This document shows positions 17,896 to 47,404 of a stretch of 64,000 nucleotides of DNA, piece by piece (position 1 is the first letter of the stretch; each line of letters opens with the position of its first letter). The stretch is taken from the NCBI RefSeq assembly GCF_006345805.1, contig NC_043014.1:36270001-36334000 (forward strand), written 5' to 3'. A model generated the notes under the pieces. The model had not been told where the DNA came from, searched no databases, and saw nothing but the letters and a program-made list of their open reading frames with translations. The DNA comes from Octopus sinensis (lineage: Eukaryota). The translations under genes were made by a program, and so were the position numbers.

Positions 17896-18204
17896 CTGTT
17901 TTGCTGGTGAGCTGTAGAGTGCGTGATTCACTGTATACGGAACATGAGACGGAACATGAGTTACCAATGTCCCCCTCTCTTATAACGATTTTCTTAATTG
18001 ACACTGCTGGAGATAAACACTTTCCATGCGGTCGAACATCCACTTGACTCACATTTATCCAATTGTAGTGTTTTGTCTCATGACTCCATAAAAAGTCAGT
18101 AGCGCCAAAAGGTGCACCGATGTATGCTGAACATCTGAAGATCGCTAACTTGTTTACTTTAGCGGGCGGGTTAAGAAATTCAAGTTTCTTCATGTAAGAT
18201 CTCA
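17896..18204 (-). CDS. Two-Ig gene copy A, exon 3: second Ig-like domain (C2/I-like)
   Basis: Acceptor ttttcttttcag|TG, donor G|GTAAAC, 309 nt, phase 1-1. AIFRC...DFLW (Trp 15 aa after Cys) ...GDIGNSCSVSC. Confidence 0.85.
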
Positions 18205-18242
18205 CTGAAAAGAAAATAAAAAAAAAAAACGAAAAGGCGAAG

Positions 18243-18707
18243 TAGTGGCTGTGTAGTAAGTAACTTGCTAACCAACCACATGGTTCGGGGTTCAGTCCCA
18301 CTGCGTGGCATCTTGGGCAAGTGTCTTCTGCTCTAGCCCCGGGCCGACCAATGCCTTGTGAGTGGATTTGGTAGACGGAAACTGAAAGATGCCTGTCTTA
18401 TATATGTATATATGTATATATATATATATATATATATATATATATATATATATATATATATGTGTGTGTGTGTGTGTGTGTGTGTGTGTGTGTGTGTGTG
18501 TGTGTTTGTCCCCCTAGCACTGCTTGACAACCAATGCTGGTGTGTTTACGTCCCCGTCACTTAGCGGTTCGGCAAAAGGGACCGATAGAATAAGTACTGG
18601 GCTTACAAAGAATAAGTCCCGGGGTCCATTACCTCGACTAAAGGCGGTGCTCCAGCATGGCCGCAGTCAAATGACTGAAACAAGTAAAAGAGTAAAAAGA
18701 GTAAAGA
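18243..18707 (+). mobile_element. SINE family 2 immediately beside the exon-3 acceptor (duplicate ~47442-47921)
   Basis: B-box-like ggttcagtccc, cttgggcaagtgtc core, internal (TA)n(TG)n, tail gctccagcatggccgcagtcaaatgactgaaacaagtaaaaga. Confidence 0.85.
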
Positions 18708-19277
18708 GAATCGAAATATGCTTATCTTCGAACAAAGGGCCTCACAATAAAAGAATAGTTTCTCTAATGTAAACTACAATCTTCATACAAAACTAAAACA
18801 TTTGACAACACTCCAATTATTGTTAATGCTGGACTTTGGGAACTGTTGCTTGGAAGTGGTTAACTGTGTAAGCAGTGCTAAGGCTGTGTGGAGCCAAGTC
18901 ACTAGCAATAACTCCACAACAGATGAATGACACATTCATACACGTGTATATTTACTTACACATAAGCATGTATTTGTGTGCAATTATATATATTTGCGTG
19001 TGTGCGTGTATGTATGTGTGTGTGTGCGCATGTATGAATATGTGGACACATATATAGATACATATATATACACATACGCAAACATATTTACATACATTCA
19101 TGCCTGCATATACAGACATGCACTTAGCGGTTCGGCAAAAGAGACCCATAGAATAAGTACTGGGCTTACAAAAAATAAGTTCCGGGGTCGATTTGCTCGA
19201 CTAAAGGCGGTGCTCCAGCATGGCCGCTGTCAAATGACTGAAATAAGTAAAAGAGAGAAAAGAAAGAGAGGGACTTA

Positions 19278-19640
19278 AGGGCATGCTGGACGGTACCTAC
19301 ACCAGAATGTTACGTGCAGTGCCCTACATTTAATGGAGGGAGCACCCAACTAAACAAAGGTTATATGGGAATGTATCAACTTTCTCATCAATCATCTAAG
19401 AGCGGACATTGGGTTTTGCTGACCATTGCTGGAGAAGTAAAGAAGAACTTGTGAGTAACGAGTTGTTGTGGGCACCAAATCACGGTACCACAGCGACTGG
19501 AAGACCACGGAAGACATATATACAACAGCTTGCAGAAGATGTTGGATACCAAGTTGAAGGCCTAAAAACACTAATGGAAGATCGGGAGTGATGGAGAGAG
19601 GTAGTCAGGCTGGCCTGGGCAATTGACCTGACTGGATGAA
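19278..19640 (+). mobile_element. RTE/RTE-X 3' fragment in intron 2 (duplicate at ~48487-48845)
   Basis: LDGTYTRMLR...FADHCWRSKEELVS..LLWAPNHG...GRPRKTYIQQL. Confidence 0.75.
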
Positions 19641-44400: not shown

Positions 44401-44416
44401 AAAACAGGTATTAATG

Positions 44417-46180
44417 AGTTTCCTGGTCCATTTCTACCAGTCCAAAGCTTTTGACAAGGTTGAACATCGGTATCCGGTGCTGGTCCTCTGCTTTCGGGGT
44501 CGGCCTCGTCTTTAGAGGGTGGATCATTGCTTTATACAGTAACATTGACTCGATAGTTCGGGCGAACGGGTTCTTCTTGAAGCCTATCAACATCAAGCAC
44601 TCTGTTCATCAAAGGTGTCCTCTCTCCCCACTTCTGTATGTATTGGCTCTAGAGTTCTTGCTGCGGAAGTTGGAGAGATTAAAGTGCATCCCACGAGATC
44701 TAGGTGGCAGTGGGAAGGTTTCGGCGTATGCGAATGACATCACCATCATAGTGTCCGAAATGGTACACCTACAGAGGGCAGGCAACGCCATTAAAGGCTA
44801 TGAGGCAGGAGCAAAAGTTAACTGGAATAAGTCAGTCGGCTTGCAACTCGGCACCTGGCAAGGCAAGACGATACCTCCCAACAACATCGTAGGGCGTTGG
44901 GCGGAGGGGCTGGTTAAAATGTTAGGGGTTTAGTTTGGCCAGATCTCCAGATAATGAATTGGAGCGAGGTGACGAGCAGGGTGATCCAGCTAACTCAGAC
45001 CTGGTCTCAGTGGCGGCTCTCCCTGAAAGGAAGGGCAGAGGCCGCAGTTGTGTTTATCGGTTCCGTGATTAACTACCGCCTAACCGTCGTGCCTTGCCCC
45101 CGTTCGTGGCTGATCAATTTAGAGGTCTGCTCTTCCGTTATTTTGTGGAGTAGAAGCGCTCTGTCTGCTGCCAGTACCCGCTAAATGGTGGGCAAGGGAT
45201 GTCTTGGCTGTTGAAGCGCAGACGTGCGCTGATGCTGAGGTATCTGTGTCTCTACCTGGATAGTGAACAGGTGTGGTCTCCGTTCGGTCGGTTGTTATTT
45301 CCTAAGCTTACTAATTTGAGTGAACTAGGACCTTGGGTCAAGTGTAGACGAAAGTTGAGTGCTTGGCAAGCGAAGTGTTGTGAGGCACTCAAGCTTCTCT
45401 GTCACGTGGGCAACGCCAGCGGTGGGGGGGGGGTTCCACCTCGTATTTTTATAGAGGGTTAGTTGAGGTCCAGTGTGACGACGATGTGGGTGAAGACTCT
45501 AGGCTTCGATGATGGTCAACTAGCCTGTCTGTTCCGAAGGACATTTGGGCCAGGACCCTTGGATAACTTCCAAAGATTCCCCGCCTGGCAGTGTTACTGA
45601 GGAGCCTTACCAATTCGCGATAAACTCGCAAAGCATGGTGCACCTTGCGCACCCGCGCGCCCAAGATGCGAGCAGGACAGGGAAACTGTTCTGCACGCGA
45701 TTGTACAATGACCCAAAATTTCCGAAATGTGGGTTTACCTTGAACACACGCTGACGCGGCCGGGAAGAGTACAACTGTCTTTCGAGTCGATTGTATAGAT
45801 TGTTCCTGCCTCCTCTTTTAACAAAGAAGGCATCGCTCGTTTTCTCATTGTGGTCGCTATACCGAAAGAAGTAGTATGGAAGACCCACGTGAAAAGAATC
45901 GTGAGAGGCATTTTCATCTCCAGCCTTGGACTGGTTAATTTCCTCATCTACCATCTTAAGAGAAAAATTAGGGTGGAGATAAATGCCTGTCACCTGATTT
46001 ATACGGAAAACGATGGAAGGCTGTAGCGAGTTTGTTGAGAATGAAGAATCCGCATAGTATATCCATAAGATTATACAAAACGGTTACAATGGTTGCATGG
46101 GTTTGCGGGGTCGAAGCGAAACCCGTCCCCCATTTCATTGTATGGTTATTGTTTGGTATCATCCTATTTATATAAATTCT
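44417..46180 (+). mobile_element. Degenerate Tx1/L1 ORF2, copy B
   Basis: Duplicate of 15220-16990. Confidence 0.85.
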
Positions 46181-47098
46181 TAACGTAAATTTTTAACTAT
46201 TCATCTATTCTAAAATCATTCGTTTTATCCACTCCTCCCTCATTTGTATCGTCCCCTCTATGTTTGGCCCCTGTGGGCAATAAAGAAATAGTCGTTCTTG
46301 TTCTTTGAGTTGCTGTTGGTGACTGCAGGGAATGGTGGGACAGCGTAGGGCAGGGTGGGAGTAGGGTAGAAATTCACATTTTCGCCTTGATTTCTTCTTT
46401 TCCCTCTCTTCCGTTTCTTTGGTGCCGTATTCCATCCATGTTTCTCCTCTGCCACCTGATTATCTTCCTCCTTCTTCGGTTCCTTTTTGCTCACATATGA
46501 CATCGCAAGCGGTGGAGGTGCGCTTTCTTTCGTTGGTCCTTTGCGGCAGGTGGAGTGTATCCTGTTTTATGTGCCTTTTTGGCCGCATTTAAAGCAACAG
46601 TGAGTCATACCACTTTGCCACGTGAAACGGGGTGCACCATTTCTCTACTACTGTGTGTATAGTGTGCGCGTGTGTGTATGCATGTGTGTGTGCGTGTGCG
46701 TGCGTCCCTGCGTGGGTACGTGTGTACATGCGTTCGTGCATGTGTATGTACGTATTTATAAAGAGAAAGTCCGCTTTTCCGTGCTGTACGGACCTTTTCA
46801 CTACAATTTCCGCCATAAGGAGGACTTTATGCAAACCATGTCATATAGAGTGCATTTAAAGGATGCAGCTTCTTATATCAACTTAATGTCTCTAGAATCT
46901 TAAAAAAGAAAATATATAAATTTGGTTAATCGTAATGATATACCTGTCAAGGATAAATATAATTGTCAATATAACCGTGAGTGGATGTACAAATTTACTG
47001 AAAGGTGTAATTTAACCAGAAATATTGTTTCATGAGACGTTAATGTACAAGAATATATAAAGGCGTTAAGGAAGATAACACAAAGAAAATTTGTTTAC

Positions 47099-47404
47099 CT
47101 GTTTTGCTGGTGAGCTGTAGAGTGCGTGATTCACTGTATACAGAACATGAGACGCTTGAGTTACCAATATCCCCCTCTCTTATAACGAATTTCTTAAGTG
47201 ACGCTGCTGGAGATAAACACTTTCCATGAGGTCGAACATCCACTTCCTTCACATTTATCCATTTGTGGTGTTTTGTCTCATGACTCCATAAAAAGTCAGT
47301 AGCGCCAAAAGGTGCACCGATGTATGCTGAACATCTGAAGATCGCTAACATGTTTACTTTAGCGGGCGGGTTAAGAAATTCAAGTTTCTTCATGTAAGAT
47401 CTCA
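47099..47404 (-). CDS. Two-Ig gene copy B, exon 3: second Ig-like domain (diverged)
   Basis: 306 nt, phase 1-1, same splice sites as copy A; 8 amino-acid replacements plus a 1-codon indel relative to A. Confidence 0.8.

Follow-up and report, generated by a model that had tools for sequence, protein, structure and literature searches.

Patchy gene conversion between tandem paralogs as the probable source of a divergent immunoglobulin exon in an octopod gene array

Patchy interlocus gene conversion occurs in tandem families of immune-type immunoglobulin (Ig) genes such as KIR/LILR, the butyrophilins and the NITRs. The FREPs of Biomphalaria and the VCBPs of amphioxus are also multigene families, in which genes with N-terminal Ig superfamily (IgSF) domains are diversified through gene conversion or high polymorphism. 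Here, we describe two tandem paralogs, A and B, in a 64,000-nucleotide (nt) stretch of Octopus sinensis DNA (NCBI RefSeq assembly GCF_006345805.1, contig NC_043014.1, positions 36,270,001 to 36,334,000 of the forward strand). This stretch is called the window, and positions refer to it unless stated otherwise. Each paralog has a V-like Ig exon, exon 2, hereafter the V exon, and a second, C2-like Ig exon, exon 3, and A and B differ far more in exon 3 than in the introns around it. Patchy gene conversion between old tandem paralogs probably explains this pattern. The divergence landscape of the two units is mosaic, the exon 3 variants are shared with other paralogs and other species, the ratio of nonsynonymous to synonymous divergence (dN/dS, or omega) in exon 3 is about 1, and the exon and intron trees conflict. 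Exon 3 does not evolve faster than the introns; the surrounding introns have recently been homogenised, whereas the exon has not.

Self-BLAST of the window reveals a sequence duplicated in tandem, with the copies ~29.2 kb apart. The part of unit A that can be aligned with unit B covers 9470–30092, and unit B covers 38393–59193; with the closest Octopus proteins as guides, one five-exon gene is found on the minus strand of each unit. Exon 3 is located at 17896–18204 in A and at 47099–47404 in B, with AG/GT borders and phase 1-1 in both copies, and the coordinates and lengths given by a first-pass annotation of the sequence (309 nt in A and 306 nt in B) are confirmed. In a global alignment, the two exons differ by 13 substitutions and one 3-bp indel, all within a 212-bp patch at A 17939–18150 (B 47142–47350) on the minus strand. 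The protein differences listed by the annotation are all present, namely K18M, Y46H, N47K, S52K, Q53E, V67A, I69L, I72F and NSCSVSC versus NSSVSC, and it was correct that the sequon NVS and one Cys are lost and the sequon NSS is gained. The downstream intron is identical, as had been noticed, with zero A/B differences over 17526–17938, and the interval 18151–18461 contains a single difference, at 18222. The recombination breakpoints of the patch lie within 17526–17938 and 18151–18221. In the 309-nt type of the exon, a near-perfect 12-nt tandem, TCATGTTCCGTC/TCATGTTCCGTA, at 17945–17968 encodes SCSV-SCSV, and a single local duplication or slippage event probably produced both the additional Cys and the difference of 3 bp in length.

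The clustering of A/B differences in exon 3 far exceeds chance. The 13 differences in 306 positions compare with 0.8% in the low-divergence core around the exon (binomial P = 1.6e-6), with 7 in 1667 clean columns of introns 2 and 3 (Fisher P = 6.6e-7) and with 1 in 823 clean columns of intron 2 (P ~1e-6). Other apparent A/B clusters are misaligned indels or microsatellites. Dense patches in intron 1 at 21143–21150, 21448–21456 and 24348–24356 were rejected as substitution clusters, since they are misaligned indels. A microsatellite in intron 2 (18462–18495 versus 47662–47710) has unlike motifs in the two units, and its 12 alternating G/A differences and 15-bp change in length come from a (GT)n as opposed to an (AT)n composition. 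A small group of 5 A/B substitutions is found at 16091–16135, inside a decayed retroelement in intron 3 of A, which is recognised by a reverse-transcriptase-like open reading frame (ORF) fragment at 15254–16323 on the plus strand.

The patch stands inside a larger mosaic. Substitution divergence between A and B is 3.74% and 3.70% in the outer parts of the units (9470–12426 and 26963–30092). It is 0.75% at 12741–17895 and 0.90% at 18205–26962, with alignment artefacts still included, within a low-divergence core of about 14.5 kb on the minus strand (A 12741–26962, B 41939–56007) that includes the V exon. The 4.2% divergence of exon 3 represents the old, outer-part level inside this homogenised core.

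The DNA compared with the window comprises about 149 kb of the O. vulgaris array (OX597833.1 44.09–44.24 Mb; stretches L001, L003 and L002), in which there are five units, Ov1 to Ov5, and one O. bimaculoides unit (L004), which was used as the outgroup. The 309-nt type of exon 3 is present in A, Ov2, Ov3 and Ov4, and the 306-nt type in B, Ov1, Ov5, O. bimaculoides and unit c of the O. vulgaris gene model P0007. A has the state of Ov2/Ov4 at all 13 substituted sites, and the state of B is common to Ov5, Ov1 or O. bimaculoides at 9 of the 13 sites and at the indel. Because the outgroup has the B state at 7 substitutions and the indel, the 306-nt type is ancestral-like and the 309-nt type is derived. 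P0007, which was found by an exhaustive profile search, is a chimeric model of 726 residues spread over 144 kb. Its residues 316–527 correspond to the V exon of A followed by exon 3 of B, with 2 differences in 212 residues, and the match covers M18 and A67, which are private to B in the DNA set. The exon 3 haplotype of B is therefore present in an independent assembly, and so the A/B differences are not sequencing noise. Ov3, though of the 309-nt type, carries the CAG-ATG of Ov1 at codons 46–47, which represents a micro-mosaic among the O. vulgaris copies.

Trees of adjacent segments disagree in the same region. By neighbor-joining, A and B group together with bootstrap values of 100% in intron 2 and 100% in exon 2, and of 33% in exon 3, where A groups with Ov2–4 at 59%. 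A and B thus show the pattern of a gene-conversion mosaic, with adjacent segments that are discordant in trees and divergence and with variants found in other family members. The first-pass suggestion of conversion involving another paralog is supported, as the variants are pre-existing haplotypes of other members and the exon 3 tree breaks the grouping of A with B. Among the 309-type pairs (A and Ov2–4), exon 3 is mostly no more diverged than intron 2 (1.3% versus 4.4% for A–Ov2, and 0.7% versus 1.9% for Ov2–Ov4), with small reversals in Ov2–Ov3 and Ov3–Ov4. The divergence of exon 3 is still above that of the introns in A/B and in the other 306/309 pairs. The alignment of intron 3 between the window and the O. 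vulgaris units was left out as unreliable, given an apparent divergence of 31% and a structural difference.

Diversifying selection on exon 3, which the annotation had offered as its first alternative, finds no support in these comparisons. Between A and B, the Nei–Gojobori estimates are 0.048 for dN and 0.047 for dS, giving an omega of ~1.0 (Fisher P = 1). The changes were said to be mostly nonsynonymous, and they are, at 10–11 nonsynonymous to 3 synonymous; however, this equals the neutral expectation on ~236 nonsynonymous and ~67 synonymous sites. That dS in exon 3 is as high as dN points to an older segment rather than to a target of selection on the protein. A tree-free count over the family gives 29 nonsynonymous and 7 synonymous changes (omega ~1.2, P = 0.43). 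The selection reading was to be given up if, with more sequences, dN/dS were at most 1 and exon divergence did not exceed intron divergence. The data come close to this: omega is indistinguishable from 1 and most 309-type pairs fit, whereas A/B and the 306/309 pairs exceed their introns. An exon that is more diverged than its introns, and mostly at nonsynonymous sites, can thus arise without selection when conversion homogenises the flanks of old paralogs, which calls for caution with similar patterns.

On this explanation, A and B would be old neighbours, ~3.7% diverged, in a tandem array of octopod genes with two Ig domains. Recent gene conversion or unequal exchange would have homogenised about 14.5 kb from intron 1 to intron 3, V exon included, and a segment of 212 to ~700 bp containing the exon 3 patch would have been left in, or restored to, its older state. 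The outcome would be an A copy with a derived 309-nt exon 3 and a B copy with an ancestral-like 306-nt exon 3. The mechanism may have been a discontinuous tract, produced by patchy repair of heteroduplex DNA, or a later, short conversion with a third paralog as donor. The long tract probably passed from B to A, which would have kept the 309-type exon 3 that it already had. This direction is favoured by an O. vulgaris unit in which the V exon of B is linked to the exon 3 of B. A tblastn search of the window for a third paralog as conversion donor found only the two copies. Several points weigh against this explanation. The patch is wholly intra-exonic, as would also be expected if selection kept the exon types apart. 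An exact DNA donor for the B patch is absent among the sampled copies, of which A (13 differences) and Ov5 (15 differences) are the nearest, and the window holds only part of the array of this species. The combination found in A, this V exon with a 309-type exon 3, is backed by no second assembly, and the O. vulgaris unit most like B is known from the P0007 gene model alone. Strictly, the trans-species sharing of variants means that O. bimaculoides and the independent O. vulgaris assembly contain them too.

The intra-exonic position of the patch leads to the alternative that selection maintains two functional types of exon 3, either by removing recombinants that erase the 306/309 difference or by favouring diversity. 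This is unlikely, although several features fit it. Each of the two types is retained by several units, across two or three species, the patch is confined to exon 3, the A/B differences shift N-glycosylation sequons and one Cys, the exon has a family-wide omega of 1 or more, a value uncommon among folded domains, and the adjoining V domain is positively selected. That omega is not significantly above 1 (P = 0.43), however, and 3 of the 9 amino-acid changes (V/A, I/L and I/F) conservatively exchange one hydrophobic residue for another in a predicted beta strand. Furthermore, B may be a pseudogene, the O. bimaculoides isoform P0015 is without exon 3, which suggests that the exon is dispensable, and a single patch in a single pair is too little to tell selection apart from patchy conversion of the ordinary kind. 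Relaxation of constraint after pseudogenisation of B was rejected as the cause of the cluster, since the adjacent introns are equally unconstrained and yet undiverged. A recent duplication followed by fast new mutation of exon 3 under positive diversifying selection would likewise account for the excess of exon over intron divergence between A and B and for the 10–11 nonsynonymous changes among 13–14. Such a history is extremely unlikely, because 9 of the 13 substitutions and the indel pre-exist in paralogs or other species, and the full B haplotype is present in O. vulgaris. An omega of ~1.0, with a dS of 0.047 raised like dN, is also unlike the outcome of selection on the protein.

An error of assembly or polishing would place the anomaly in the flanks or in the unit as a whole: reads of near-identical units could have been mixed, so that flanks were falsely homogenised or a chimeric unit was built. 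The homogenised core does bear the signature of long-read error, with 29 one-base indels against roughly 70–100 substitutions. Of these indels, 23 are bases that B lacks, and 14, about half of all 29, lie in homopolymers of at least 3. This suggests that these indels are residual long-read errors. In addition, the V exon of B has an apparent insertion at a codon that is substituted in the O. vulgaris counterpart. Nevertheless, long-read errors take the form of indels rather than clustered substitutions, exon 3 of B beside this V exon is backed by the gene model of an independent assembly, and exon 3 of A matches the 309 type of three O. vulgaris units. Nor would false homogenisation pass over just one segment of 212 bp, and the artefact is very unlikely as the source of the exon 3 pattern. 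Conversion between old paralogs remains the probable explanation, and the phenomenon in exon 3 would be an ordinary interparalog conversion mosaic in a tandem Ig gene array.

The V exon behaves differently from exon 3. Across the family it is under strong and significant positive selection: a tree-free count gives 60 nonsynonymous to 5 synonymous changes (omega ~3.3, P = 0.002), and its dN exceeds the intron 2 rate with P from 3e-3 to 9e-7. Pairwise omega in exon 2 ranges from 2.7 to 4.9 or is undefined, as in A–Ov2 with 25 nonsynonymous and 0 synonymous changes. Except in Ov3–Ov4, exon 2 divergence is 6.6–12.9% against 1.5–5.7% in the introns, and nearly all of it is nonsynonymous. In the V exon, nonsynonymous change is thus about three times synonymous change and is also faster than change in the introns, so that exon 2 qualifies as a positively selected exon and exon 3 does not. 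The V exons compared are located at 19753–20085 of the window, 12513–12845 of L001, 19734–20066 and 47149–47481 of L003, and 15789–16121 of L002. The variable V-domain positions fall mostly in the B-C, C'-D and F-G regions, which are predicted to be loops. The variable residues of exon 3, placed on secondary-structure elements of a structural model described below, map to the end of the A-B loop, the C-C' turn, the C' strand, the E strand and the E-F loop; at this level they are spread over both sheets, and no single surface is claimed. A rapidly evolving Ig family of recognition type, as the annotation had proposed, is accordingly supported by the V exon and not by exon 3.

In copy A, all splice sites are GT-AG and the coding sequence is intact (801 nt, 266 residues by assembly and translation). 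B has the same five-exon layout, and internal exons are all of phase 1-1 with lengths in multiples of 3 nt. On the minus strand, the coding part of exon 1, which specifies the signal peptide MLLVMMLLMSSYTSA, lies at 28083–28128 in A and at 57130–57175 in B, where it carries T13I; this exon is outside the homogenised core. The V-like Ig domain is encoded by exon 2 at 19753–20085 in A (333 nt, phase 1-1) and at 48959–49292 in B (334 nt). Exon 4 is a mini-exon of 33 nt encoding TEQQAIRDNA at 11713–11745 in A, with Q replaced by K in B (40808–40840). The coding part of exon 5, at 10238–10317 in A, ends the protein with KLSDANIITKILKFAATLLVIGHFH and the stop codon, a hydrophobic tail like a glycosylphosphatidylinositol (GPI) signal; its counterpart in B (39165–39244) has Y in place of S.

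The V exon of B had been reported to be without substitutions. This is literally true, but a 1-bp insertion at B 49139, the sole difference from A, was overlooked. The extra base changes CAAAGT to CAAATGT on the minus strand and, in this assembly, causes a frameshift with an immediate stop after FQM. The O. vulgaris counterpart is in frame at this site and reads FQCKK, with Cys at that codon (inferred codon TGT). The CAA-A-TGT of B differs from this counterpart only in the length of the A run, and from A by insertion of a T. The extra base may be a real pseudogenising mutation or an error of homopolymer length in the assembly, and in the latter case S51C in the V exon is a further A/B difference.

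In protein searches, the closest relatives of A and B are unnamed O. vulgaris models and O. bimaculoides LOC106880713. The family comprises 45 representatives or clusters at 50% identity, with at least 8 units in O. vulgaris. The roughly 30 members whose origin was checked belong to O. vulgaris, O. sinensis, O. bimaculoides and Argonauta hians, apart from one weak Haliotis match, and the family is apparently restricted to octopods. Literature searches on the family or its LOC identifiers found no published description. Pfam searches with single exons gave no Ig match at E <= 1, and full proteins stayed below the gathering thresholds (V-set 14.5 bits against a cut-off of 26 for P0004, C2-set_2 14.8 bits against a cut-off of 21 for P0040); a sequence search against PDB chains gave no significant match. 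An Ig fold is nonetheless predicted, with C40, FFL and EDATYYKC114 in domain 1 and C151, W166 and EGDIGNS(C)SVSC in domain 2 standing for the B-strand Cys, the C-strand Trp or aromatic residue and the F-strand D-x-G/A-x-Y-x-C motif of Ig beta-sandwiches. The structure was modelled on O. bimaculoides P0004, which stood in for the A protein. Its AlphaFold model has a mean predicted local distance difference test (pLDDT) score of 71, and domain 2 is all-beta with scores of 80–90. Foldseek comparison of this model with the PDB gave 644 Ig-type matches at E <= 1e-3, of which the best are BTN3A1/BTN2A1, PD-L1 and SIRP-alpha (probability 1.0, E 2e-7 to 1e-5, template-modelling (TM) score ~0.5–0.6). 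The label of a second Ig exon is acceptable on these grounds, as the sub-threshold V-set and C2-set matches and a model that resembles V-C Ig ectodomains agree with it.

The C-terminus of A and B consists of 25 residues with an 11-residue hydrophobic end, and no transmembrane or cytoplasmic region is present. The tail, ...DKLSDAN-IITKILK-FAATLLVIGHFH before the stop codon, is highly conserved across units, and the N-terminus has a signal peptide. By inspection, the succession of small residues, a spacer and a hydrophobic end looks like a GPI-attachment signal, and the proteins are predicted to consist of a V plus a C2 Ig fold with a GPI-like tail. The second domain may be encoded by a cassette exon. 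The O. vulgaris models P0001, P0002 and P0007 join exons of several adjacent units, and their products are in frame, with phase 1-1 exons in multiples of 3 nt. Such joined or exon-skipping models may be annotation artefacts or may reflect real read-through or cassette splicing.

The DNA of the window is AT-rich metazoan DNA with 37% G+C and abundant microsatellites. A third tandem unit starts at about 63.3 kb at the window edge, where 63266–64000 is 93.7% identical to 37917–38648, and the array extends past the window end. Between units A and B, a retrotransposon of the long interspersed nuclear element (LINE) type is located at 34491–37844 on the plus strand; its endonuclease and reverse-transcriptase ORFs (145, 478 and 506 residues) are broken up by frameshifts, and copies 95.6–96.8% identical to it also lie between some of the O. 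vulgaris units. In intron 2 of both A and B (18235–18700 and 47435–47919), ~30 bp upstream of the exon 3 acceptor, there is a dispersed repeat of ~460 bp that resembles a short interspersed nuclear element (SINE). Further copies are found at 503–972 (inverted) and, several of them, in the O. sinensis locus L006. Matches of the window with the O. sinensis loci near LOC118766814 and LOC118766816 (L006 and L005) are dispersed repeats only.

As a by-product, the comparison brings out an octopod V-C2 family, so far undescribed, whose V exon is clearly under positive selection. Because we know of no variable Ig-type recognition system in cephalopods, it would be reasonable to study the expression and binding of this family. 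A broader and rather doubtful proposal is that the array encodes octopod-specific B7/butyrophilin-like V-C2 surface proteins that serve as a germline-diversified recognition repertoire, be it immune, self/non-self, gamete or chemotactile. Positive selection would then drive the V variants, and phase 1-1 exons in multiples of 3 nt would allow conversion, and possibly also exon skipping or read-through splicing, to bring together domains of different units, with the two exon 3 types as functionally distinct modules held apart by selection.

With the FREPs and VCBPs, the octopus family has in common that it is an invertebrate multigene family with N-terminal IgSF domains; in contrast to them, it lacks a fibrinogen or chitin-binding domain. 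At 11–17% identity to B7, butyrophilin and PD-L1 ectodomains (IgV plus IgC), the likeness is one of fold and architecture only. The window genes are without a B30.2 domain or transmembrane segment, and A and B, having no transmembrane helix and no significant sequence match, do not qualify as members of the B7/butyrophilin family. They do share with it a V plus C architecture at the fold level, and an Argonauta relative gives a weak CD80-like C2-set match. Unlike KIR/LILR, the butyrophilins and the NITRs, the octopus family is molluscan, has no detectable sequence homology to them and ends in a GPI-like tail instead of a transmembrane segment with a signalling tail. As in those families, however, Ig exons are of phase 1-1, positive selection acts on the membrane-distal V-type domain, and long near-identical tracts are broken by short older segments whose variants are shuffled between copies.

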